DNA of 64,000 nt, from sequence record OP123707.1; one strand, 5' to 3'. Of this stretch, positions 2,777-51,906 are shown in pieces. Numbering within the stretch: the stretch's first letter is position 1; each line of letters begins with the position of its first letter. The notes under the pieces were generated by a model. It was given only the letters and a program-made list of their open reading frames with translations. It did not search any database and was not told the DNA's origin. The translations under genes and the position numbers were made by a program.

Positions 2777-3181
2777 ATGTCCCACTTAAAACACATCATT
2801 GCTTTAAACGCGAAGCTAATCGAAGAAGGCATTACGTGTCCTGAGAAACACAACGCCATCACCACTAGTGCGGTAGTACGTGCGGTTGTAGGTTACTCTT
2901 ACATGACAGGTGGTGTAGACGGTCCTTCAATGACTCCTGAAGCATCAGAGCGCATGGAGCGCACTGTAGGCATGTGGAACGAAGTTTCTCCTCTAGACTA
3001 CGAAGCGATCTTTGATCAAGTCCGTGCAGTGTTCCAACGTCTGTACAACCAAGCGGTAGCAGGTGGTAAGTTCACTCCAATCGTTGTTGAAGACGGTGTG
3101 GATTTCGACCCAATGACCATCCCTGAATTCGAAGCCACGTTCAAAGCTCTGCTTACTGAAATGATCGAATACAACAAATAA
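2777..3181 (+). CDS. Small virion protein (phiKZ gp85-like)
   Basis: 134-aa ORF coupled to the previous gene; synteny and size only. Confidence 0.55.
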   Translation: MSHLKHIIALNAKLIEEGITCPEKHNAITTSAVVRAVVGYSYMTGGVDGPSMTPEASERMERTVGMWNEVSPLDYEAIFDQVRAVFQRLYNQAVAGGKFTPIVVEDGVDFDPMTIPEFEATFKALLTEMIEYNK

Positions 3182-5416: not shown

Positions 5417-8338
5417 TTATTTATTTTTGTAGTGTGCAAGGAACGCATAAGAGATAGCGTCTTTAACACTCGATACACCATCGCCGGCATTTTCCATTCG
5501 TTTACGAACAGAGAAACTGGTTGTGGTATCCAAGTTAGACACTACATCAATCTCTTGGTTATCCGCCAAGGCATTCAAACGAAGATCCACTACGTCACTC
5601 GGTAATGCATCTTTCAGTGCACGCACGATCTCATTATTAGACACCGTAGGGTTTTGCAACATCTGGTTGATTACATTAGAGGTGATCGATTTCAGCGCTG
5701 GACGAATCGTGTCACTACGCACACCCGCTGGCGTTAGGTAGAAGACCACGTTAAACGCTAAGTCAGCACGGACCTTAGTTTCGAACTGTGAGTTCATGAC
5801 CACGTTGATCAGACCCAGTTTCACTTTAGGAGCGAACATCAAGTCGGTTTTATCTCGCATTTGACTCTCAAAGTTTGCCAAGTCCTGCATGACCACATCG
5901 GTGATGTACGCTTTAGTGCGACGGGCATAATCCAAGTCGTACTCATCGTTAGAGAAATGGTAGTTGCCATCGAAACACACGAAGTCCATGTAGTACTTCA
6001 GTTCGTTGCCTTTCAGTTTGATCGGGTTATCGAACTCATCTTTCACCAAGGAGTTCTTGTAGTGCAGTATGATCGGTTCCCCGTTCTCATTCAGCATCAC
6101 TTCCCCAGCTCGATGTTCTAATACCAGACGACCATCTTCAAAAACGTATTTCCCGTCTTCCCCGCGCTTGAACGTATCTTCCGGCCACGTTTCTGGAACG
6201 TCTTCTTCATAACGCTGGTATTGTGCATCCCCTAACACCGGATGGGCGCGGTGATACAAGTTGTTTAGCGTTTTACCAAAGATCAGATCGTAACCCACTT
6301 CAATCAAACACGTCATGCTGGTCGGGTATAAAGCTGGATCGATCAACAAATCCTGTTCGGTTTGTTTCTCACCTTCCGAACCTTCTACCAAGAACAGTAC
6401 GCGGATGTCAGATTTCAATTCCGCTTTCACACTGGAGATAGGACGGCTGAACATGAACATATTCGTGAAGTTCAATAGATCACGAGAATCCACGTCAAAG
6501 TTGGAATGCAGTTCAAAAGACCAAATGCGATCATTGTCCGCATTACGACCTAAGATACCACCTTTAAGCGTCGCTATGTCATTCGAGTCTGCTGGACTGA
6601 AGTACAGCTGCGCACCTACTTTCTCGTCTGACATATTACGGTAGTTATCGTCACCACGAGTCACCATGATGATGCGGTAACCGGTTTCACGATGTTCCAC
6701 TAAAATAGATTGGACAGACAACTCAATACCTAGCGTATCTTTCTCATACAAGAAGTTTTGATTGTCGTATTTAGGAATATCCAAGAGATAAGGGCGAACC
6801 TTAACCGTACCACCGGTGACGTCCAGAACGGTATGGAAAGGAGAGTACACCAACATATGGTTATTAATGTAATCCAAACGCTCATCCGAGGACATTTCAT
6901 TGATCACGTCAATCTGAGTCTTAGGAAGAATACGAGTCCCGGTGTCCGTAACATCAAAGACTGTGCCTGGTGGGAGGGTAATACGACTGTCGTTATCGTA
7001 GACCACACCAGAGTCCCGCAGCTCGTCCATGGAGTACATCACACTTGAGATGTAAGCATTCACACTCTTAACTGCGTTGTCCGCATCTGTGTACGTTGGG
7101 AGCTCACGAGTCACCTGGTACAAACGGTTAGTGTAAACGTCGATCAGTTTTGTGGCGGAATACCCGTAAGAACTCAAGTACCCACTCAGCTGGTTCTCAG
7201 AGATCGGAATAGATTGACGACGTGCATTATGAATCGCTTCATTCTTAAGTTGCAAGAATGAACGTGGATTACCACCACCCGTTACTTCCGATTGGATCTC
7301 CCAAGCTGAGTTGTTTACTTCACGAATAGGTGCGGCGTAACGGTCCAGCTTATTGGCGTCGTAATCGTAATCCAAATACGTCGGCATGTGCGTATGGGAA
7401 CGCAATGTCGTCATGTCTTGTTCATAAGCTCCTTTGGTCGTGTAAACCACTAAGGTTACGACACCGATACCTTTACCATTACTGATGAAGGTTTCCGGGA
7501 TAGAGTAGACGAAGTTTTGATTGTCTTGGTCGACGTCGACTGTCAATGTCACCTCATCTTGGTTAAAGACTTGGTTGTTGTACGCGATACGTAATTCACG
7601 CGTTTCACCATTGGTTGGCTTCAACCAAGCACGGACACCAAACAACTTATCTTTGAAGTTGTACGTTTCCTTTAAACCCGCAGACGGTGTAACCGCAATC
7701 TTACGTTTGGTCTCACCACGCAATTGTTTAACAGGAATATCCACGTACAAGTATTCTTGATCTAAGATGTTCACCGTACGACGCTCTAATGAGTTCGTAG
7801 TGATGTTAAAGTAAGGGTGTTGAGTCTTAGAGTCGTAAACCACCTGAACGTGTCCAGCTTCCATTAAGCGGAACTCAATCGCGTGAACAATGCTGAACGG
7901 CACACCATAGACTTCAATGATGGAATCTTTTGGCATCGTCAGTTTACGGTAACGGTTAATTACTGTACCGGATTGTTCTTCGTACTCCACCGCCAGGCGA
8001 CGGATTTCAGCGATCGGTAGAGAGTAACGCATGATCGCTTCACTCGGGTAACCGAACAGACCGTAAAACTCATAGTCACTCATGTGACGGAATAAGTCCG
8101 ACGGTGTACGAGCGTGTTCACGGTAAAGACGAGACTCCACATCACCAATGCGGTTGATCAAACCGGCGGATTCTGAACAGATGGTGTCCAACGCTCTTAC
8201 AAAAGGATGTGATGAACTTTCGAACTTCACACGTTGCCCACCAAATGCTTCTGCTGTACGATCGAGTACTAAAGAAATAGCACGACCGGGGTTGTTCGCA
8301 ATTCGGTTTAATTCATCATAGGTTAATTCACCGTTCAT
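5417..8338 (-). CDS. Large virion structural protein, probable baseplate wedge (phiKZ gp87-like)
   Basis: 973 aa, beta-rich, reverse-strand pair with the next gene as in phiKZ gp87/88; synteny and size. Confidence 0.65.
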   Translation of the reverse strand: MNGELTYDELNRIANNPGRAISLVLDRTAEAFGGQRVKFESSSHPFVRALDTICSESAGLINRIGDVESRLYREHARTPSDLFRHMSDYEFYGLFGYPSEAIMRYSLPIAEIRRLAVEYEEQSGTVINRYRKLTMPKDSIIEVYGVPFSIVHAIEFRLMEAGHVQVVYDSKTQHPYFNITTNSLERRTVNILDQEYLYVDIPVKQLRGETKRKIAVTPSAGLKETYNFKDKLFGVRAWLKPTNGETRELRIAYNNQVFNQDEVTLTVDVDQDNQNFVYSIPETFISNGKGIGVVTLVVYTTKGAYEQDMTTLRSHTHMPTYLDYDYDANKLDRYAAPIREVNNSAWEIQSEVTGGGNPRSFLQLKNEAIHNARRQSIPISENQLSGYLSSYGYSATKLIDVYTNRLYQVTRELPTYTDADNAVKSVNAYISSVMYSMDELRDSGVVYDNDSRITLPPGTVFDVTDTGTRILPKTQIDVINEMSSDERLDYINNHMLVYSPFHTVLDVTGGTVKVRPYLLDIPKYDNQNFLYEKDTLGIELSVQSILVEHRETGYRIIMVTRGDDNYRNMSDEKVGAQLYFSPADSNDIATLKGGILGRNADNDRIWSFELHSNFDVDSRDLLNFTNMFMFSRPISSVKAELKSDIRVLFLVEGSEGEKQTEQDLLIDPALYPTSMTCLIEVGYDLIFGKTLNNLYHRAHPVLGDAQYQRYEEDVPETWPEDTFKRGEDGKYVFEDGRLVLEHRAGEVMLNENGEPIILHYKNSLVKDEFDNPIKLKGNELKYYMDFVCFDGNYHFSNDEYDLDYARRTKAYITDVVMQDLANFESQMRDKTDLMFAPKVKLGLINVVMNSQFETKVRADLAFNVVFYLTPAGVRSDTIRPALKSITSNVINQMLQNPTVSNNEIVRALKDALPSDVVDLRLNALADNQEIDVVSNLDTTTSFSVRKRMENAGDGVSSVKDAISYAFLAHYKNK

Positions 8339-9377
8339 CAGGTACCCACCATTCTAGTTCCATGGTTGCTACGTTTATCCATGGGTAAGCTTTAAAGTTG
8401 TAATCTAAGAACTCAGTGCGATCGAGTTTACGATAAAGTCGTTGACGTTTACCATCTGCCATATCGGGATTAAACTTGATCGTTGAGCCGTTGAAACCAT
8501 CCACACATTCGAAAGTGTCAGCGCGAGCACCAATGGATTTAAATTGGATGTCGAACGTATCCTGTCCAGGACCACGTCGCCCACCTTGAGTTAAATCAAT
8601 GCTGGCTAAACTTCCCTGAGGGTGAGTAGATGGAACCGAACTCAAAGTCATATAGATCGATTCGATGTTCACCATGTTCGGGTTCATGAACAGGTGATAG
8701 ATACGGGTATCAAAGTCCCAGTAGTTTTGGTATTGCGCTTCCCAGTACGGCTCCATCCCATGATCCCCTAAACGGACTTCAGGAATGTAATGTTCCCAAA
8801 CCCCGAATAAATAAGGAAGGATGCCACCCTTAACGTTTTTGTAAGACTGGTTGATGGTCAGTGCACCATTGGTTTCCATAATGCCTTCCATCCATTGGTA
8901 AACCTCTTGACGAATACCAGGTTGGGTGGTGCTGTTTTCTAACTCCAGGTCTGGGAACCCATCCGACTTTTGGAGTAAGTTGGTCAACAGTGGCATCCAG
9001 GCATTAAGGTTATCTAACGCTGGGTGATTGTAAGTACGACCTACTCGGTAGTCCAGTAACCCACGAATATACCCACCTAATGAGTTGGAGTCCGCTTTGA
9101 ACAATTTGGCAAACCGAGGGGATTTGGAAACGTTCTCATCGCTGAGATTCAACATTGGTCTGGGGATAAACATTAATCCTATGGTGTCATCAGCCATAGG
9201 CGCGAGTTGTATGCCGTTACCCAATATTTTTATGCCATGTAAAATATTGCCCAACGGACTAAGATAGCTGCCACCGCCATTTTCCTTGAAGATATCGTTT
9301 AACCAAATTTTTACCTTTGGATCGACTTCTCCAGTAAAGGGGTTGAGCTTATCTGGTTGCTTGTCAATTTCATCCAT
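8328..9377 (-). CDS. Virion structural protein (phiKZ gp88-like)
   Basis: 349 aa, overlaps the start of the 973-aa gene; synteny and size. Confidence 0.6.
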   Translation of the reverse strand: MDEIDKQPDKLNPFTGEVDPKVKIWLNDIFKENGGGSYLSPLGNILHGIKILGNGIQLAPMADDTIGLMFIPRPMLNLSDENVSKSPRFAKLFKADSNSLGGYIRGLLDYRVGRTYNHPALDNLNAWMPLLTNLLQKSDGFPDLELENSTTQPGIRQEVYQWMEGIMETNGALTINQSYKNVKGGILPYLFGVWEHYIPEVRLGDHGMEPYWEAQYQNYWDFDTRIYHLFMNPNMVNIESIYMTLSSVPSTHPQGSLASIDLTQGGRRGPGQDTFDIQFKSIGARADTFECVDGFNGSTIKFNPDMADGKRQRLYRKLDRTEFLDYNFKAYPWINVATMELEWWVPDER

Positions 9378-9415
9378 TTTAAATTCCTAATAACTTAACT
9401 TAAAGAGAAACTATT

Positions 9416-10564
9416 ATGAGTACTTTTATCGGTCTTGGCACCGCTTTGCTGAGTTTGATCGGTAGTAAAGAAGCCGAGAATCTCGTAGAAACTGTCGATG
9501 CTAGCATTAAGCACGGCGGAGCAGGTTTAGCGACTGCCCAAGGTAACAGTGTTGTTACCGCTGCTCAAAAAACTATGATTCGCCCTATGGTTGTTGTAGA
9601 GCAATCAGTGGTACATCAGGACTATGCGTCCGACCTGATGACGATCATACAATTGCGTGATATTCAGGCAACTTTGACGCATTTACGCATGCAAGGTACC
9701 ATCGCTGGTCTGCAACTTGAGAAGTACATCGACCCTATTCGTCCTACTCGTAACATGGGTCGTCGCCTAGGCAGCTTCGGTGGTTTGGAGTCTTTTGGTG
9801 GCACACATCTAGTGAAACCGGAAGTTGAAGAGATCGCAGGTCAAGAAGCTCTGGACAACAAAGAACCAGAGAAAACACCAAACGGTGTGGTCATTGATTC
9901 TAAAGCAGCTCAAACGGTCCTGAGCGAATACACACCTTTAGCTCTAGGTCGTACTGTAGATGCACAAATTACCCTTGACGACAAAACCATCACGTTCCCG
10001 CTAACGTTCCGTCAGATCCCAGTTCCAATGGGTCCTCGTGACATCGAACGTATTTTCGACAACGCGAAAGGTGAAGACTCTTGGGGTACACGTTTTGATA
10101 AGTTAGACGTGGGTATGATCACTACACCTGAACTGCTTACTGGTCGTGACATCATCAAAGATAAGTTCCGTGTTCGCTTAGAAGATTTGAAAGCCAACAC
10201 CAACTATATCAACGACTCGATCAAGAACCAACGCAATCACGTTGCTAAAGCAGTAAGAACGGGTCAGATGTCCATGAACAACATGGCTAACACGTTCATC
10301 ATCACCGACACCACAGCTCGTCAAATCGAGTTGGCGACGGGTAAACGTTTTGATAACGTGTCTCAGCGTGAGTCTCTGTGGAAAGGTCTGCGTGCAAACA
10401 CTATCGTGATTTGTAATGAAGCGCGTGGTTTGTTTACGTTCTACACCATGGGCATCAAACTCCCTGAGCAGTACACTCGTAACGACATCAAACAGAAAGC
10501 GGCTAAAGAGTCTAGCGTAGGTTCTTTGGCGGACATCATGAAACTTCTTAACGGCGGTATGTAA
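9416..10564 (+). CDS. Inner body protein (phiKZ gp89-like)
   Basis: 382 aa; GGLE and AGQE sites near aa 125-145; synteny and size. Confidence 0.65.
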   Translation: MSTFIGLGTALLSLIGSKEAENLVETVDASIKHGGAGLATAQGNSVVTAAQKTMIRPMVVVEQSVVHQDYASDLMTIIQLRDIQATLTHLRMQGTIAGLQLEKYIDPIRPTRNMGRRLGSFGGLESFGGTHLVKPEVEEIAGQEALDNKEPEKTPNGVVIDSKAAQTVLSEYTPLALGRTVDAQITLDDKTITFPLTFRQIPVPMGPRDIERIFDNAKGEDSWGTRFDKLDVGMITTPELLTGRDIIKDKFRVRLEDLKANTNYINDSIKNQRNHVAKAVRTGQMSMNNMANTFIITDTTARQIELATGKRFDNVSQRESLWKGLRANTIVICNEARGLFTFYTMGIKLPEQYTRNDIKQKAAKESSVGSLADIMKLLNGGM

Positions 10565-40233: not shown

Positions 40234-42414
40234 ATGAAAAGAAATATCGTAGCTCAGCTAGGTTCATCTAACGCGGGCATTTACCAAAGCATCAAGAACT
40301 CTCTTACGAACGGTGCTCTTGACACTCTGAGTGGCATGGAGTCTTTCTCTAGCGCTGCTAACGCACTAGACGCAGTTGCGGGCAACGAATCTTTCCGTGG
40401 CGCTGCTGGTGAATACTTCAAGGGTATGTCTGGCGAGCAAAAGCACGCTGTAATCACAGCAACTCAACGTGCTCTTTCTGGTAACGCAGTTGCAGGTCTT
40501 GAAAGCCTAATCGAATCTGAGCGTGCAGTTGCAGGTCTTGAAGGTTTCTCTTGGGCTCAGTCTTCTGGTACTTCAACTGAAACTAAAGCGGCTTCTATCA
40601 CGCTTAACGCTCTAGCACACCGTCAAACTGACGCTGCTGAAGCAATGTTCAAAACTGTAAGCATCCCTTACGAAGCTGAACAGCTAGAGTACACTGTACG
40701 TACTTCAGGTCTTGGTCGTTACATCTACGGCGCATCTGCTTACGATTCAGCTTCTCAACTACAACCAGTAACTAGCCTTCTACGTCAGTCTAAGTACTTC
40801 CTAGACGACACGCTAGAACTACACCCAGTTTACCCAGCAGCTTCTGAATCTCCAGCTCGTAAACTGTTCGTAGACGCAGCAGACTTTGCTCCTTGGGAAC
40901 AAAGCTACTCTCAAGCTGACGCACTACGTCGTAACACTCACGAAACTTCTTTCCTACGCGTTGGTAAGGCAGTTCCAAACCTACTAGGTCTTTCTGAAGT
41001 ACCTGGACAAACTCCTTACGATTCATCTACTGATGAAATCGAAGCGAACTCAATCACTGTACAGAAAGTTCTGTTCAAAGTGACTGTTGACGGTACAGAC
41101 CACGTTGTGGTTCTTCCTACTTTCAACTTCACTAACTCTTCTTTCGGTGTGAGCTCTATCGGTCACTCGTCTGACGATCGTAACCTAAACATGACTGTTA
41201 AAGGTCTACCGGTTACAGCATTCACTGACAAAGACGGTGAAGCTTCTACAGCGTTTGACGCTCTACAAGCAGCTGGCGCTAAAGCGTTCTTCGGCTTCAA
41301 CCTAAGCGGCACGTTCCAACGTCAAAACTACTCGATCCAAACTTCAGCTTCTGATCTGAACCTTGAGTACATCGAGCTAGACGGCGTTAAACACAACGCA
41401 GCAACTAAGAACACAGCTGTTAAAGCACTGTTCGCTAAATTCGCTGAAGGCGAAGTAATCGGTTGGTTGCCTTCTTACAACCACAACAACGTTAACCGTA
41501 CTAACTTCGGTTACCGCGTAGAAGTGTTCGACGCTCACAAAGTAATGAACGTTCGTCGTGAAACTCCTATCTCTGTGAAATACCCAGTTGATAAGAACGA
41601 CGTAAACGAAGGTTCATTAAGCTTCGCGATCGACGAAATGAACACTATCCTTCAAGCACAAACTACTGCGAAAGCGTACAAAGCTGCTGAAGGTCACATC
41701 GCACGTGTTGCTTCTCTAAACGGTCACGCTATCGTTGGTAACGAGCAATCAGCTTCTGTAATGGCTGGTATGCACTTCGTTAACGCTTCTTACCTAAACC
41801 GTAAGATGAAACTAGCGGACGCAGTATCTGCACTAGATTCAACTACAGTTCTAGAAGCTGTAGAGAAAACTATTACTATGAACATCACAGAAATCTGTGC
41901 TGCTCTAAGTACTATCTCTGGTCTAGCGGCAATCAGCGAATACCGTCGTGTTGAGAAGAAGTGGACTATCATCGGTCACCAAAACCTTTCTCGTTACATG
42001 ATCCGTCAAGGTGACGCTCGTACTCTTGGTAATGGCATCAGCTTCAAGACTATCGACTCTAACCTAGATGACATGATCGGTAAGTTCTACATCATCCCTG
42101 AGTCAGAAACTACTGATAGCAACATCGACGTGATCGGTGGTATGGGTGTAATGATCTCGAAAGAGCATCAAGTAATCCAAGCTAACCTAACTCGTAACAA
42201 CGCGGACTTCGGTATCGTGATCACTCAACCAGCGTACAAACACCACTCTGTGTGTCCAATCGTTGGTGTCCTAGAAATCGAAGATGCAGCAAACGCTATC
42301 TCTGAAGAAGGTCTGATCCGTTACCTAAACGCTCAACGTGTCAACGTTGTTAACGCTGAAGAGTTCCCAACTTCAGAAGCTCCGGCTGGTGAAGAAACTG
42401 GTCAGTTACCATAA
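40234..42414 (+). CDS. Major capsid protein (phiKZ gp120-like)
   Basis: 726 aa, strongest codon optimisation seen in the window, N-terminal propeptide with SGME/AGNE/AGLE/AGLE sites, strong terminator, synteny. Confidence 0.88.
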   Translation: MKRNIVAQLGSSNAGIYQSIKNSLTNGALDTLSGMESFSSAANALDAVAGNESFRGAAGEYFKGMSGEQKHAVITATQRALSGNAVAGLESLIESERAVAGLEGFSWAQSSGTSTETKAASITLNALAHRQTDAAEAMFKTVSIPYEAEQLEYTVRTSGLGRYIYGASAYDSASQLQPVTSLLRQSKYFLDDTLELHPVYPAASESPARKLFVDAADFAPWEQSYSQADALRRNTHETSFLRVGKAVPNLLGLSEVPGQTPYDSSTDEIEANSITVQKVLFKVTVDGTDHVVVLPTFNFTNSSFGVSSIGHSSDDRNLNMTVKGLPVTAFTDKDGEASTAFDALQAAGAKAFFGFNLSGTFQRQNYSIQTSASDLNLEYIELDGVKHNAATKNTAVKALFAKFAEGEVIGWLPSYNHNNVNRTNFGYRVEVFDAHKVMNVRRETPISVKYPVDKNDVNEGSLSFAIDEMNTILQAQTTAKAYKAAEGHIARVASLNGHAIVGNEQSASVMAGMHFVNASYLNRKMKLADAVSALDSTTVLEAVEKTITMNITEICAALSTISGLAAISEYRRVEKKWTIIGHQNLSRYMIRQGDARTLGNGISFKTIDSNLDDMIGKFYIIPESETTDSNIDVIGGMGVMISKEHQVIQANLTRNNADFGIVITQPAYKHHSVCPIVGVLEIEDAANAISEEGLIRYLNAQRVNVVNAEEFPTSEAPAGEETGQLP

Positions 42415-42450
42415 CGGTAACTCGTTAACGATTCGTTAACATAACTCCTT

Positions 42451-42490
42451 ACTCCCTCTACCTTCGGGTAGAGGGAGTTTTTTGCTTTTT
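42451..42490 (+). terminator. Intrinsic terminator
   Basis: ACTCCCTCTACC-TTCG-GGTAGAGGGAGT followed by a T-run. Confidence 0.9.
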
Positions 42491-42501
42491 ACTTAAAACT
42501 A

Positions 42502-42519
42502 ATCTCAAGTCTATATAGT
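42502..42519 (+). promoter_or_regulatory. Early promoter motif ATCTCAAGTCTATATAGT
   Basis: Matches the 18-mer at 29800 at 15 of 18 positions. Confidence 0.7.
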
Positions 42520-42549
42520 TCATGGGTATCTTAATAAAAGGATTATTCC

Positions 42550-43161
42550 ATGAATGACTTAATTCAAAAATACCAACGTTTAGTAATTTATAGACAATCA
42601 TTGATTATGTTAATAGCGGCTCCTGTTCCAGCAGCGATGATTAAGTTGCAAGGGGAGCTGTTGAATGAACAAACTATTGCATTGATAATAATACTGGGTA
42701 ATTTGTTTTCGATGTGTGGGACACAGTTGAATAAACTAAGTACTAAGTTGTTATTTATTGGTGGTAATGTAATTAGTGTGATTGCGGTGTTAGGTATTGT
42801 GTTGATGTATTTAGGAGAAATAGAGAATAGTGTTATAGTGGTGTATTTTCCAATAGTGTCTTGTATGGGATTTTTATTAGTTGGATTAGCATCAGGTCAA
42901 GTGAATGATGCAATGAAAAATAAATATAAAGAAGAGTTTGATATAAGTCATTATAATGCTAAGAAAAGTTCATTTGCAAGCGCAGCTATGGTAATGGGGC
43001 AAGGGATAGCATTAGTGTTTTATAATTTGGTAGATGTAGATCCAATTATGGTTTTGTTATTTTTAGAAACTGTGAATTGTCTTTTATATTTGATAGCTGA
43101 GATAAATAGGTGGGGTCTAATTAAAGAGATGGAATTGGAATTAAAGGAAAGCAGAATATAA
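42550..43161 (+). CDS. Polytopic membrane protein (about 6 TM segments, half-MFS-like topology) in a cytosine-depleted gene
   Basis: Six hydrophobic segments; AAGGA RBS at 42538; own promoter and terminator. Confidence 0.75.
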   Translation: MNDLIQKYQRLVIYRQSLIMLIAAPVPAAMIKLQGELLNEQTIALIIILGNLFSMCGTQLNKLSTKLLFIGGNVISVIAVLGIVLMYLGEIENSVIVVYFPIVSCMGFLLVGLASGQVNDAMKNKYKEEFDISHYNAKKSSFASAAMVMGQGIALVFYNLVDVDPIMVLLFLETVNCLLYLIAEINRWGLIKEMELELKESRI

Positions 43162-43164
43162 GTG

Positions 43165-43189
43165 AAGGGCTTCGGCCCTTTATTTTTTT
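43165..43189 (+). terminator. Intrinsic terminator
   Basis: AAGGGC-TTCG-GCCCTT followed by TATTTTTTT. Confidence 0.85.
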
Positions 43190-43224
43190 GTCTTTTTTAA
43201 GAAGTAGTTCAGTTTCGGTAAATT

Positions 43225-43242
43225 ATTTCAGACCTATATTAT
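43225..43242 (+). promoter_or_regulatory. Early promoter motif ATTTCAGACCTATATTAT
   Basis: Same family; precedes the operon containing the nvRNAP subunit, which must be an early product. Confidence 0.75.
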
Positions 43243-43300: not shown

Positions 43301-44362
43301 ATGTCTATTAAAGTACCAACTAACCACACTGAAGACCCATCCATGCACATGGCGGAAAGATACCCGCATGAGGATCAACTCGGATACAAAATCGTTAATC
43401 AAACCAACAAGGATGTTTTGATTAAGCGCAATGCGTTTAACACCACCATCCCGGGTATAACGATTGGAGATCAGGACAGCAACTGTATTAAAGTTCATGT
43501 TACCTTTGGACTTACTGTTACCGATCTCAACGAATTCGAAGTTGAAACTCCTTTTGATGCATTGCTCATGGACATGATCCACGAGCACGATGGAAAGCGG
43601 TCAGCTTTATTTGGCTCTTTTTGCTCAACCACGGTATCGATCGGAATAGCGAAACACAACCTTCCAGAATTCGTAGGACCAGACGGTGGAATCCATTCTC
43701 GGCTACTAGGATTTTCACTGTACGGTTTCGACGGATGGGAAGAGAAGGATCTTATTGAACCAGGACCGTTTACAAATAAAGAACTTTGTGACGAGCATGG
43801 GAATAAAATTAGTAAGAACCAATACGCTCAGATCATCTATGAGTACATCAACAACACAGAACCTGATTTGATTTTGTTTACCCCAGTCGGTAATCAGATC
43901 ATCAAACTGGTCCCTAAACAGGACCCAACGTTGGAGAACCAACTCCGCATCCACGTACAAAACGAAGGAAAAGGTAAAATGACGACATACAGTTATAACT
44001 TGCCAGATTCTCGTGTGGATCTGGTTAAGTTCCATAAGGCTCTGGAAGAGTACGATTTGCATTTGAATGCATCGAATGCAATGGAGTCGTACAACAGCAA
44101 ATCTTTACTGCGAATGCAATCTATCGCAAAAGAACAAAATAAAGAAATTGAACGTCTAAACAACCAGCTAGTTAAACTAGAGGACTCTAAAGGCAAGCTT
44201 AAGGAGGCAAATAGCAAACAGCAGCTCAAGCACGAGCAGTCGTCCATTTGGACTAAGTTGTTTGAGAGTATCATTAAAGTGCCGTTCAGTATCATAGCTT
44301 CTTTACTAGAGCGAAAGTTAACAACGGTATTAGCAGCACGGCTGTTTGCTGCCTTGATTTAA
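43301..44362 (+). CDS. Conserved hypothetical protein (position of phiKZ gp122)
   Basis: Start moved to ATG 43301 (GAGGA RBS; the track start lies immediately after the promoter motif); C-terminal coiled coil plus amphipathic helix. Confidence 0.7.
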   Translation: MSIKVPTNHTEDPSMHMAERYPHEDQLGYKIVNQTNKDVLIKRNAFNTTIPGITIGDQDSNCIKVHVTFGLTVTDLNEFEVETPFDALLMDMIHEHDGKRSALFGSFCSTTVSIGIAKHNLPEFVGPDGGIHSRLLGFSLYGFDGWEEKDLIEPGPFTNKELCDEHGNKISKNQYAQIIYEYINNTEPDLILFTPVGNQIIKLVPKQDPTLENQLRIHVQNEGKGKMTTYSYNLPDSRVDLVKFHKALEEYDLHLNASNAMESYNSKSLLRMQSIAKEQNKEIERLNNQLVKLEDSKGKLKEANSKQQLKHEQSSIWTKLFESIIKVPFSIIASLLERKLTTVLAARLFAALI

Positions 44363-50904: not shown

Positions 50905-50922
50905 ATTTCAGACCTATATAGT
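50905..50922 (+). promoter_or_regulatory. Early promoter motif ATTTCAGACCTATATAGT
   Basis: 16 of 18 identical to the motif at 43225, and both are preceded by ATT. Confidence 0.75.
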
Positions 50923-50988: not shown

Positions 50989-51438
50989 ATGATTAACGCT
51001 GCAACTAACACTGAAAAAACTGTTGAAGAAATCGCTCAAGATCTACTAAACAAAGTACAGGAAGATCAAAAGGCTCCATCAACATCTGGTCGCAAAGGTT
51101 ACAATGGTTACGTTCTTGTCGGTGGCGCAATTGGCGCGGCAGGCACAGCGGCACTAACTCAAAACCCTGTATCAGCAATCGGTGGTCTAGCAACTACGCT
51201 AGTAGCTTCATACTTCTTCTCTCAAGAAGATCGCGAAGGAAGCTTCGTTAAAGACGGAGGCATCGGCCTAGCTGCTGGTGTGGCTGGCACTTTAGCTTGC
51301 GACTTAGGTATGAGCAAATTTAACAGTGGTGACGAAAGTGACACACCAACAGAGAATGAATCTGGTGTCGCACTTGAAGTCACAATGGACTCAGATCCAG
51401 AAGCATCACTTGAGTCTTTCCTAAAATCATTTCAATAA
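50989..51438 (+). CDS. Glycine-zipper membrane protein A
   Basis: VLVGGAIGAAGTAAL...GGIGLAAGVAGTLA flanked by acidic segments; GAGGA RBS. Confidence 0.7.
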   Translation: MINAATNTEKTVEEIAQDLLNKVQEDQKAPSTSGRKGYNGYVLVGGAIGAAGTAALTQNPVSAIGGLATTLVASYFFSQEDREGSFVKDGGIGLAAGVAGTLACDLGMSKFNSGDESDTPTENESGVALEVTMDSDPEASLESFLKSFQ

Positions 51439-51450
51439 GAGTACAGCATT

Positions 51451-51906
51451 ATGAGCATCCACGGTCAGAACATCCAAGAAGTACCAGCAGTAGAAACTAA
51501 CCCATCAGTAGATCCAATCGTTTACCAAACGAACACAGAAGGCAACAATATCATGGAAGAAGAACTAAGCAAGATTCTGGGTGAAGTTGAAGAAGAACAA
51601 TCAACTCCAGTAGAGTCTGTTGAAGAAGATGACAAAAAGGTTATCTCTAAAACACTTTACGTTTCACCAGAACGCATGCTAGCAGGTATCGCAGGCACCA
51701 TGTGTGGTGCGGTAGCAACTAATAGCAACACCGCAGTGATCACTGGTACACTAGCTTCTATGGCGGTATCGGTGTCTACTGAACCTAGTGATGAAGAGAA
51801 ATCACTAACTAAAGAAATCGGCATCGGTCTAGTAACGGGCCTAGCAGGTTCTACAATTGGTGGTCTCCTAGCTAACATGCTATCGTCTAGCAAAGCAGAA
51901 GCGTAA
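51451..51906 (+). CDS. Glycine-zipper membrane protein B, paralog of A
   Basis: LAGIAGTMCGAVA...EIGIGLVTGLAGSTIGG aligns with protein A. Confidence 0.7.
   Translation: MSIHGQNIQEVPAVETNPSVDPIVYQTNTEGNNIMEEELSKILGEVEEEQSTPVESVEEDDKKVISKTLYVSPERMLAGIAGTMCGAVATNSNTAVITGTLASMAVSVSTEPSDEEKSLTKEIGIGLVTGLAGSTIGGLLANMLSSSKAEA

Follow-up and report, generated by a model that had tools for sequence, protein, structure and literature searches.

A single gene of the Vibrio phage phiKT1028 nearly lacks cytosine on its coding strand, and its deficit is shared by several diverged members of the same protein family. The gene, a 203-codon ORF at 42550..43161 (+), lies within the window that we analysed, which is a 64,000-nt stretch of sequence record OP123707.1. 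Taken as a whole, the evidence is best explained by selection that minimizes the number of C's in one transcript and so maintains the avoidance, an account that rests on sequence comparison and that we regard as probable, if only just.

The gene occupies an accessory cassette that contains or adjoins the following features.

42451..42478 (+): upstream intrinsic terminator of the major capsid gene, a 12-bp stem followed by a T-run, which forms the left boundary.
42489..42530 (+): promoter-like element, comprising an AT-rich tract, an octamer at 42511-42518, and a G-run ca. 7 nt downstream of the octamer.
42499..43214 (+): the accessory cassette, ca. 0.7 kb, with limits set by alignment with relatives.
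42538..42542 (+): RBS-like AAGGA, 7 nt upstream of the ATG, read from the sequence.
42550..43161 (+): CDS for a 203-aa, six-helix membrane protein predicted to resemble one half of an MFS transporter (C 8.2%, C3 2.0%, where C3 denotes C at third codon positions).
43160..43195 (+): intrinsic terminator of the cassette itself (GC-containing hairpin, then a T-run), which holds several of the few C's of the unit.
43234..43241 (+): canonical promoter-like octamer of the next gene (43301..44362), which lies outside the cassette and marks its right neighbour.

The cassette is thus accessory and monocistronic, and it brings its own terminator along with a promoter-like element, an RBS, and an ORF of 203 aa. 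The octamer at 42511-42518 is one or two letters off an octamer that recurs between the genes of phiKT1028, the core of which is found in 13 intergenic segments and at 28 sites genome-wide. Nearly all family members have a similar promoter-like element 40-70 nt upstream, and the canonical octamer at 43234..43241 is conserved in pTD1, VP4B, and phiKT1019. Intrinsic terminators were verified at 42451-42478 and at 43160-43185. The cassette terminator is kept in phiKT1019, and equivalent terminators are found 3' of the homologues. No sigma-70-type promoter was found when we searched upstream of the ORF. In phiKZ-like phages, the early operons carry a phage-specific AT-rich motif whose centre lies near -10 relative to the transcript start (PMC7598289); by likeness to that motif, the promoter-like element putatively belongs to the early class, read by the virion RNA polymerase. 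The original prediction of an early promoter, RBS, and terminator belonging to this gene was therefore borne out as to the RBS, the terminator, and a promoter-like element, whereas "early" stands by analogy. A sub-threshold match to the PyrG leader (Rfam RF02371), a CTP-sensing attenuator, at the capsid-terminator hairpin (42451..42478) was rejected as chance: its score of 34.5 bits falls short of the gathering threshold, 65, its E-value is 0.78 over the window, and the alignment covers the terminator hairpin only, with no sign of the 5' start element, a G-run beside the promoter able to pair with the CU-rich arm of the terminator. The phage that carries the cassette, phiKT1028, is a nucleus-forming jumbo phage.

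All base and codon counts of the original prediction were reproduced. The 612 nt of the ORF comprise 50 C (8.2%), 144 G (23.5%), 203 A, and 215 T, giving a C/G ratio of 0.35, and the third codon positions hold 73 A, 72 T, 54 G, and 4 C. The C-ending codons are numbers 3, 8, 144, and 201, and codons 9-143 include none. The adjoining major capsid gene (40234..42414) uses C-ending codons freely, as had been claimed, with a C3 of 27.5%. Within the window, a GC skew of +0.45 to +0.58 was seen across this ORF only. Over the full phiKT1028 record, 268 ORFs reach 100 aa; their C3 averages 0.261 (SD 0.058), and the value of 0.020 for this ORF is followed by a next lowest of 0.139; the gene is the sole C3 outlier among the 591 ORFs of the 239-kb genome. 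When C3 was computed genome-wide and across the fetched loci, the same level did not appear in many other genes, in keeping with the prediction.

Expected counts were taken from a model in which the amino-acid sequence is fixed and codons are drawn from genome usage, with the simulations drawing counts only. Under this model, 49.9 ± 5.1 C-ending codons are expected and 4 were observed (z = -9.0). Total C is 50 versus an expected 112, and the theoretical minimum for the 203-aa protein is 35. General AT-richness was rejected as the cause, since G3 is normal (54 observed, 51.8 expected) and G and C are balanced in the window's other low-GC ORFs; the original argument against an ordinary AT-rich transfer is therefore upheld. 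The argument against tRNA supply also stood: ARAGORN found no tRNA genes in any of the five pieces into which the phiKT1028 genome was divided for all statistics, and two-fold NNY codons are C-depleted as strongly as four-fold boxes, with the wobble U form used in 8/8 Phe, 12/12 Asn, and 7/8 Tyr codons.

A cause at the level of translation, in which slow or rare codons pace membrane insertion or hold a toxic protein at a low level, would fit the prevalence of U forms among NNY codons and the strong enrichment of ATA and AGR, both of which are atypical for phiKT1028 (of 23 Ile codons, 12 are ATA; of 4 Arg codons, 3 are AGR vs. ca. 8% in the genome). ATA is also high in family members that show no C depletion, as this idea would have it. 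However, the common codons GGT, GAA, AAA, and CAA, which do not end in C, occur at normal rates, an observation that also led us to reject general rare-codon selection; the phage lacks tRNA genes; and other multi-pass membrane proteins of the same phages are normal. For the same reason, membrane-protein composition was rejected as a cause: C3 ranges from 0.19 to 0.36 in the TM ORFs of phiKT1028, hydropathy and C3 show a correlation of r = 0.02, and PnuC in locus L024 has a C3 of 0.246 vs. 0.075 for the neighbouring family member. Moreover, C is avoided through the choice among six-fold codons and through the amino acids themselves. The Leu TTR:CTN ratio is 26:5 in the phiKT1028 gene and 25:1 in L023, the Ser AGY:TCN ratio is 16:1 in L015, and the fraction of amino acids with an obligate C is 0.12-0.15 in the extreme members against 0.20-0.25 otherwise. 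Avoidance by way of TTR, AGY, AGR, and amino-acid composition suggests that the target is the nucleotide rather than the codon, and we judge a translational origin improbable.

We can hardly credit a further idea, that the skew serves a nucleic-acid function of its own, either as an unstructured message or as an R-loop, for example at a priming site. The GC skew of +0.5, which extends for 0.6 kb beyond a promoter-like element, would suit it, as would a minimum free energy of -133 kcal/mol, which is weaker than the -166 ± 12 of other genes. Yet when random strings of matched base counts were folded as controls, those with G = C and the same A/T were less stable (-117.5 ± 6.8) than the skewed ones (-123.4 ± 7.5), showing that structure is not reduced by removing C in particular, and the message itself folds into more structure than shuffled versions of it do. 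A region of 68% A+T is also ill suited to stable R-loops, G is unenriched in most family members, and the trait travels with the protein family to different genomic positions.

The cassette is both atypical in composition and polymorphic for presence among relatives. Alignment showed that VP4B lacks it entirely, that pTD1 lacks 42541-43214 yet retains the 5' promoter-like stretch in decayed form, and that phiKT1019 carries the whole of it at ca. 91% nucleotide identity. The decayed remnant in pTD1 indicates that the cassette is old in the lineage. A tblastn search of 50,697 phage records found the gene in just 2 of them. Between phiKT1028 and phiKT1019, the gene differs by 7 amino acids and 44 synonymous changes, which implies strong purifying selection on the protein; in flanking genes of the same pair, 12-56% of residues differ. 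T/C differences between the two copies number 8 vs. ca. 12 expected under neutrality (unpolarised counts, since silent sites are saturated in the nearest outgroup), a result compatible with weak selection and also with no current selection, and nearly all C3 positions are private to one copy or the other.

Its product is one of a small, undescribed family of 172-210 aa proteins, so far seen on phiKZ-like jumbo-phage contigs only, where the homologues occupy differing genomic neighbourhoods. Searches of 5.8 billion proteins and of 1.84 billion representatives returned no homologue outside such contigs, a pattern scan of IMG/VR gave none outside phiKZ-like phage contexts, and a scan of 185,579 bacterial and archaeal genomes in GTDB gave none. 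When C3 was expressed relative to each member's own contig, z was -8.5 in phiKT1019, -8.1 in L015 (51% identity), -7.8 in L023 (38%), -5.4 in L024 (35%), -4.8 in L020, and -4.7 in L005. Among all 604 ORFs across the fetched loci, eight have z below -4, and seven of these are family members. Three distant members have z of -2.0 to 0.1; L021 and L022 show little C depletion and the outgroup (L016, L017, and L018) shows none, so not every form of the protein is under the pressure. Four-fold sites differ between members at 42-83% and are thus saturated, and C3 positions are never common to the extreme members, which together indicate that the C-poor state has been kept rather than passively inherited. 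The feature common to the lineages is the lack of C, with the replacement base varying: the phiKT1028 gene gains A3 (+25) and T3 (+17), L024 gains A (+35) and loses T (-9), L005 gains G (+18), and in L023 the replacement is mostly T.

These comparisons bear on two explanations offered originally, import from a skewed donor and strand-specific C-to-T deamination, both of which they disfavour. A relic of transfer from a low-GC replicon with extreme strand asymmetry, not yet ameliorated, would account for a cassette that is an indel between related phages, for its GC content (32% vs. 45% for the phiKT1028 genome), for its unusual ATA and AGR codons, and for the private C3 positions of the two close copies, which look as if C's were now accumulating. 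We nevertheless consider this reading largely refuted and give it little credence. No donor was found in the databases searched, where every homologue sits in a phiKZ-like phage context, and depletion lasts at 35-51% identity with saturated silent sites. The varying replacement base would require several recent imports from different C-free donors, and the promoter remnant in pTD1 speaks for an old cassette rather than a recent arrival.

Deamination of the non-template strand is expected to leave the sense strand with more G than C. Gene-specific mutation of this kind, through C-to-T deamination of a strand exposed by transcription or through a deaminase, therefore fits both the sign of the asymmetry and its confinement to the transcription unit, and it would fit the predominance of T among the lost C3 positions of L023. 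It does not fit the gain of A3 over T3 in the phiKT1028 gene, or the gain of A only in L024 and of G in L005, and C-to-T changes are unable to yield the ATA and AGR codons that are enriched. In addition, the adjoining capsid gene, which is very highly expressed, has more C than G, and nothing unusual was seen in other genes preceded by this promoter-like motif. We regard mutation as an improbable source of the avoidance.

The protein itself was predicted to fold with confidence as a monomer of six long helices in one bundle plus a short N-terminal helix (pLDDT 92, pTM 0.83); an earlier model built from three sequences (pLDDT 52) was too poor and was left unused. In Foldseek searches, the top 50 PDB matches were all MFS-type transporters, one half of which aligned over ca. 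190-230 columns, with TM scores of 0.41-0.61 (most 0.5-0.6), probabilities of ca. 1.0, and a best E-value of only 5e-3. The best matches were MelB (9oli), NorA (28vj and 8ttf), LmrP (6t1z), and G6PT (9lnb), with query-normalised TM scores of 0.5-0.61, and giant-virus MFS proteins were matched in a viral structure library. The predicted model and the fold search thus agree with the original description of a six-TM, half-MFS-like protein. MFS transporters are twice the size of the phage protein, with twelve helices in two halves of one chain; its six-helix bundle superposes on one six-helix half, but it has only 203 aa, the E-values are weak, and there is no sequence match. Indeed, none of the 18 members matched an MFS profile of Pfam at E ≤ 0.1, and sequence-level searches of Pfam, PHROG, and PDB gave no match, so the likeness is one of fold, with homology unproven. 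Judging from the model, we think a permease-like protein of the inner membrane the most likely identity of the product, which would have to pair up before a full transport path existed.

Selection to minimize C in this one transcript would act at third codon positions and, within six-fold families, at the first two positions as well; in the most extreme family members it would reach even the choice of amino acid. The C's that remain are 70-75% obligate given the protein, and their contexts show no motif bias, which fits a cost attached to each C. Our guess, which has a modest chance of being right, is that this cost arises during RNA synthesis. CTP may be the scarcest NTP in early transcription inside the lipid early-infection vesicle; alternatively, some hosts may poison or drain the CTP pool, for example through viperin-type ddhCTP. 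A C-poor message could then be finished where others stall, and such a scheme would make sense if the task of the protein were required under exactly the CTP-limited condition. How nucleotides enter the early-infection vesicle of nucleus-forming phages is described as unknown in the literature. C content is normal in the other genes that this promoter-like motif precedes; a general early shortage of CTP alone fails to explain a single gene. Likewise, the family is rare and dispensable, being absent from pTD1, VP4B, and all other isolates, and so it is no core solution to nucleotide supply.

Selection could instead act on the finished RNA, a C-poor message evading an agent that recognises cytosine. 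We think this rather unlikely, and hold the same view of its candidate agents taken jointly, which are a low-specificity C-dependent endoribonuclease (a host toxin or a phage shut-off enzyme) and Rho. The comparative evidence for it is the same as for a cost during synthesis, and a monocistronic transcript of a nucleus-forming phage would be exposed to the cytoplasm. Rho loads on C-rich, G-poor RNA, and at a C/G ratio of 0.35 this message never presents C in excess of G. Additional G would help further against Rho, yet most members have no G enrichment, and all other phage transcripts, with their normal C, would be equally exposed. Motif-specific RNases are disfavoured because ACA is at expectation (17 occurrences vs. 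18.3 expected); UAC and GCU are still present, and sites for motif-specific interferases are avoided no more than the general loss of C entails. Thus, the original suggestion of selection on transcript C content remains a candidate consistent with all of the findings, while a motif-specific RNase as the agent loses ground.

More speculatively, the family may be a permease for cytidine-type nucleotides or their precursors, or a counter to a host defence directed at CTP. The protein would then act at the inner membrane or at the lipid early-infection vesicle, and its message would be "CTP-independent", made while CTP is scarce or poisoned, which would amount to cognate sparing at the level of nucleotides. 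We rate the likelihood of this as low. If true, it would bear on the route by which nucleotides reach the enclosed early transcription compartment.

The evidence as a whole suggests that the base content of one mRNA is under a selective pressure of an undescribed kind. A full-text literature search for cytosine-poor phage genes, and for ddhCTP in relation to transcript composition, returned nothing. If the selection is real, it is a kind of constraint on gene sequence for which that search gave no precedent, distinct from codon bias, motif avoidance, and genome-wide skew. It would mean that, in some jumbo-phage infections, a particular protein is produced or not according to how much cytosine its transcript contains, and that these infections include an unnoticed bottleneck in, or attack on, CTP or C-containing RNA. 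The undescribed six-helix, transporter-like family, specific to nucleus-forming phages, may bear on how small molecules cross phage-made compartments. Finally, the protein-fixed test for depletion of a single base, applied gene by gene, offers a cheap new screen for selection at the nucleic-acid level.

The cassette can be compared with several known systems. Like phage morons and accessory early genes, it is self-contained, sits between conserved genes, is present in some relatives and absent from others, and is compositionally atypical; unlike morons, its composition is not that of a fading import but the avoidance of one base maintained through saturating divergence. ACA-less, MazF-resistant messages and the avoidance of restriction sites are known signatures of motif avoidance. 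They share with the present case the idea of protecting a nucleic acid by removing the target that an enemy recognises, but here one whole base is minimized, down to the choice of amino acids. Transcription- and replication-associated asymmetries give the non-template or leading strand more G than C. The skew described here has the same sign and coincides with a transcription unit, yet it is far larger (skew +0.5, C3 2%) and confined to a single gene, and G and T are not raised as C-to-T asymmetry predicts, with replacement bases varying by lineage. In low cognate bias, or element sparing, proteins of assimilation and biosynthesis are depleted in the element or amino acid that they supply. That sparing concerns atoms and amino acids in proteins, whereas here it would concern a nucleotide in one message; the logic would be the same if the phage product acts when cytidine nucleotides are scarce.

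The ORF at 42550..43161 (+) of phiKT1028 (203 codons) contains 203 A, 215 T, 144 G and 50 C, and its third positions comprise 73 A, 72 T, 54 G and 4 C, the C-ending codons being numbers 3, 8, 144 and 201; on recount, the base and codon counts of the original prediction were exact throughout. A GC skew of +0.45 to +0.58 is confined to this ORF, with values of ~0 on either side. The remaining phiKT1028 record was taken as four more pieces, with statistics computed piece by piece. Among the 268 phiKT1028 ORFs of at least 100 aa, the mean fraction of codons ending in C (C3) is 0.261 (SD 0.058); the target stands alone at 0.020, the second lowest value is 0.139, and genome-wide the target is also lowest in total C and highest in 600-nt skew. 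When amino acids were held constant and synonymous codons were drawn from genome usage, the target had 4 C-ending codons versus 49.9 ± 5.1 expected (z = -9.0), and 50 C in total versus 112 ± 6, the floor for the same protein being 35. G-ending codons, which AT-rich transfer was argued to deplete as well, occur at the expected level (54 versus 51.8). The anomaly is real and cytosine-specific, and is no by-product of protein composition.

Several more familiar causes were examined and rejected. A membrane-protein effect fails in that C3 is 0.19-0.36 in other phiKT1028 ORFs with several TM segments, a PnuC transporter gene has a C3 of 0.246 beside a homolog of the target at 0.075 (locus L024), and hydropathy is uncorrelated with C3 (r = 0.02). 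A tRNA cause was ruled out because no tRNA genes were found in phiKT1028, and rare-codon selection because frequent codons not ending in C are used normally. The folding energy of the target message is -133 kcal/mol, versus -123 ± 7.5 for shuffles and -117.5 ± 6.8 for random strings with equal A and T but G = C; avoidance of RNA structure was rejected, as dropping C rather than G+C gives no less structure.

Other biases were observed along the genome. The capsid gene (40234-42414) has more C than G and a G3 of 0.118, and G3 is very low (0.074 and 0.139) and A3 high in ORFs 50989-51438 and 51451-51906; these genes are biased opposite to the target, which may be a high-expression effect. Small ORFs at 89527-90137 of the record (L011 25527-26137), and at 9445-10214 of L005, a locus with another family member, are G-rich and C-poor overall (skew 0.26-0.40); most have elevated G3 (0.30-0.38), and C3 is 0.14-0.19. 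Their skew is milder, and G-driven rather than a loss of C; ORF 89527-89847 scored as multi-TM.

Vibrio phage phiKT1028 ("Ariel", OP123707.1) belongs to the subfamily Gorgonvirinae, genus Tidunavirus, and has a genome of 238,838 bp, of which the window is bases 1-64000, numbered identically. It infects Vibrio parahaemolyticus and has been published as a nucleus-forming jumbo phage (PMC10587174). The target is preceded by a gene for a major capsid protein of phiKZ type (Pfam PF25620, E 6e-131), and each of the two genes ends in an intrinsic terminator:

42451-42478, intrinsic terminator at the end of the capsid gene
43160-43185, intrinsic terminator at the end of the target gene

The region holds 4 terminator-like sites versus 0.5 expected. 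With AAGGA 7 nt upstream of the target ATG, the gene has its own terminator and ribosome-binding site, as originally predicted. The sole Rfam match, a PyrG leader (a CTP-sensing attenuator) at 42418-42489 (+), lies over the capsid-gene terminator and was set aside as probably chance (34.5 bits, the gathering threshold being 65; E 0.78 over the window): the CU-rich hairpin alone aligns, and the defining 5' element is absent. A search for a sigma-70-type promoter ahead of the target gene found none. De novo comparison of intergenic 8-mers produced one non-trivial recurrent element, the octamer read at 43234-43241, which occurs in 13 intergenic segments, preceded by an AT-rich tract and followed by a G-rich patch; its sites include 29809, 37576, 43234 and about 25 more across the rest of the record (L011-L014). 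The next gene is preceded by a perfect copy and the target by a near-match at 42511-42518, and another near-copy lies at 50914. According to a review, each jumbo phage has a conserved AT-rich motif of its own, situated near -10 of the early transcripts made by the virion polymerase (PMC7598289). By analogy, the octamer element is probably the early-promoter class of phiKT1028, and the accessory unit, or cassette, at 42499..43214 (+) is probably transcribed early.

The cassette is present in its entirety, at the same site, in phiKT1019 ("Eric"), with 91% nucleotide and 97% amino acid identity. VP4B lacks 42499-43214. pTD1 lacks 42541-43214 (ORF and terminator) and keeps a decayed promoter-like stretch (L003 about 3040-3100) corresponding to 42480-42540, which suggests that the ORF was lost rather than never there. 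No relative of the target protein was found in other phages among 50,697 phage records. Seven of the 203 residues differ between the phiKT1028 and phiKT1019 proteins, alongside 44 synonymous changes in the gene, whereas flanking genes differ at 12-56% of residues; the non-synonymous/synonymous ratio is near 0.06 (a rough value), and thus the cassette protein is functional and tightly constrained. Intergenomic similarity between the two phages is just 42.8% (PMC10587174), and the cassette may have been swapped between co-circulating phages. The protein encoded immediately downstream (43301-44362; L002 4830-5900 in phiKT1019) is only about 44% identical between them, and the junction as it stands in phiKT1019 is almost identical to pTD1, indicating local mosaicism and recombination there. 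Elsewhere, a putative homing endonuclease gene separates the two annotated pieces of the thymidylate synthase gene (record 146028-148069; L012 33028-35069), an arrangement that looks like an intron- or intein-type insertion.

Searches of Pfam, PHROGs and PDB sequences with the target protein gave no significant match. Two relatives emerged from a word-indexed search of 5.8 billion proteins, and searching 1.84 billion representatives exhaustively with HMMER added 15 members of 172-210 aa and no other credible match. An AlphaFold model from 18 sequences (pLDDT 92, pTM 0.83) was used, a three-sequence model not being usable; it predicts an all-helical six-helix bundle after a short N-terminal helix. 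The structure search proposed in the original prediction, was run with Foldseek against the PDB; the best 50 matches were all MFS-type transporters, each aligned over one six-helix half (query-normalised TM 0.41-0.61, most 0.5-0.6; probability about 1.0; best E 5e-3). "Half-MFS-like" is therefore a fair description of the fold; membership in the MFS is not established, as the phage protein is half-size, has no profile match and is at most a putative dimer. A viral structure library yielded matches to MFS proteins from giant viruses and, of the same size as the target protein, to two unnamed viral proteins. The latter, BFVD I1VXE0 and I1VXD0 (190 and 203 aa, adjacent accessions, TM up to 0.67), are the best same-size matches and may be distant members of the family from another phage.

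DNA was recovered for 14 family members. On sufficiently long contigs the neighbors are phiKZ-type (capsid, tail tube and sheath, inner-body proteins, divergent DnaB), and the position of the gene varies from phage to phage; pattern scans of IMG/VR and of 185,579 bacterial and archaeal genomes found no relative. In nearly all members a comparable promoter-like element lies 40-70 nt ahead of the gene and a hairpin with a T-run follows it, so the stand-alone architecture is a family trait. Tandem or multiple paralogues occur on two contigs (L018/L022 and L017). At L018 10001-11284 (= L022 7284-8567) are P0020 and P0009, about 20% identical, each with a promoter-like element; L017 7047-10519 holds two more ORFs of similar size (7047-7628 and 9246-9878), with 3 hydrophobic segments each, that are candidate relatives. 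One member adjoins a NadR-like gene, the PnuC transporter gene and a NUDIX gene (L024 8684-11072), and another thymidylate kinase and ribonucleotide reductase genes (L023 8700-13280). These neighbors are suggestive of a role in small-molecule supply, in a pattern inconsistent across loci.

The C-avoidance follows the family. Each member was compared, with its protein held fixed, to the codon usage of its own contig:

C-ending codons in family members (locus; identity; observed/expected C3; z)
phiKT1028 target; 100%; 4/50.7; -9.2
L002 (phiKT1019); 97%; 8/48.9; -8.5
L015; 51%; 5/46.1; -8.1
L023; 38%; 5/45.9; -7.8
L024; 35%; 15/42.4; -5.4
L020; 44%; 12/34.6; -4.8
L005; 60%; 19/42.5; -4.7
L021; 53%; 24/35.9; -2.4
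L016; 31%; 23/32.3; -2.0
L022; 39%; 18/25.2 (G3 z = +6.4); -1.7
L018; 24%; 24/29.5; -1.2
L017; 29%; 34/33.6; +0.1

The L026 member is moderately depleted (C3 20/197 versus 35/149 in its neighbor); raw C3 is 28/196 in L019 and 30/205 in L025, with total C of 13.9% and 15.9%. In a distance tree, one large clade unites the depleted members, extreme and mild interspersed, with the normal L016, L017 and L018 as outgroup. Many genes with equally low C3 would have spoken against a special case; instead, z falls below -4 in only 8 of 604 ORFs (at least 80 aa, all loci), seven of them family members and the eighth a 1,657-aa ORF with a proportionally small deficit.

Between extreme members, 42-83% of four-fold degenerate sites differ, which is saturation with only three bases used, and C-ending codon positions are not shared (0, versus 8-10 in either). 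The replacement for C3 varies: A+25/T+17 in the target, A+25/T+10 in L015, T+33 in L023, A+35 with a decrease in T in L024, and G+18 in L005. Leucine TTR:CTN is 26:5 in the target and 25:1 in L023, serine AGY:TCN is 16:1 in L015, and AGR accounts for 3 of the 4 arginine codons in the target versus about 8% genome-wide; C is avoided wherever the genetic code permits. The fraction of obligate-C amino acids is lowest in extreme members (0.12-0.15 versus 0.20-0.25), and 70-75% of leftover C's are obligate, with no context bias. Because sites are saturated, replacements vary by lineage and avoidance extends to wherever the code permits, the depletion appears to be a maintained state rather than history. 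Import from a donor of skewed composition, one of the original hypotheses, is opposed by the same data: a passive relic would have returned to about 25% C3, and a single donor composition would not yield differing replacement bases. Strand-specific deamination, another, fares no better, since pure C-to-T change yields T only and cannot make ATA or AGR codons. Synonymous third-position differences between phiKT1028 and phiKT1019 (8 T/C, 21 A/G) fit neutrality (about 12 T/C expected) and a simple weak-selection balance (about 5) alike, both being rough figures from the flanking-gene spectrum. The argument for selection thus draws on the deep comparisons and not on this pair.

These data show that nucleus-forming jumbo phages carry a stand-alone accessory gene family that is under constraint and in which the sense strand is kept poor in C. 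We infer that selection acts on how many C's the transcript contains or, equivalently, on how many G's the template contains. Our favored guess at the agent is a cost that would be paid per C while the RNA is synthesized. Of the NTPs, CTP is usually the scarcest, and certain bacterial defenses produce CTP analogues that terminate chains. These phages carry out their early transcription inside a lipid vesicle, to which nucleotides must somehow be supplied. Such a cost could account for the pattern only if the target product were specifically needed under that stress, and other putatively early genes are not C-poor, which counts against it. The main rival is C-dependent attack on the RNA itself, by a low-specificity nuclease or through Rho loading; sequence data alone do not separate it from a per-C cost of synthesis.

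Full-text literature searches found no phage or bacterial gene described as avoiding one base in this way, and the protein family is also undescribed. As the nearest concepts differ as well, we regard the phenomenon as new. Those concepts are motif-less messages that resist interferases, the sparing of elements or cognate residues in proteins, and strand asymmetry, each of which differs in kind or scale from a C-poor message.
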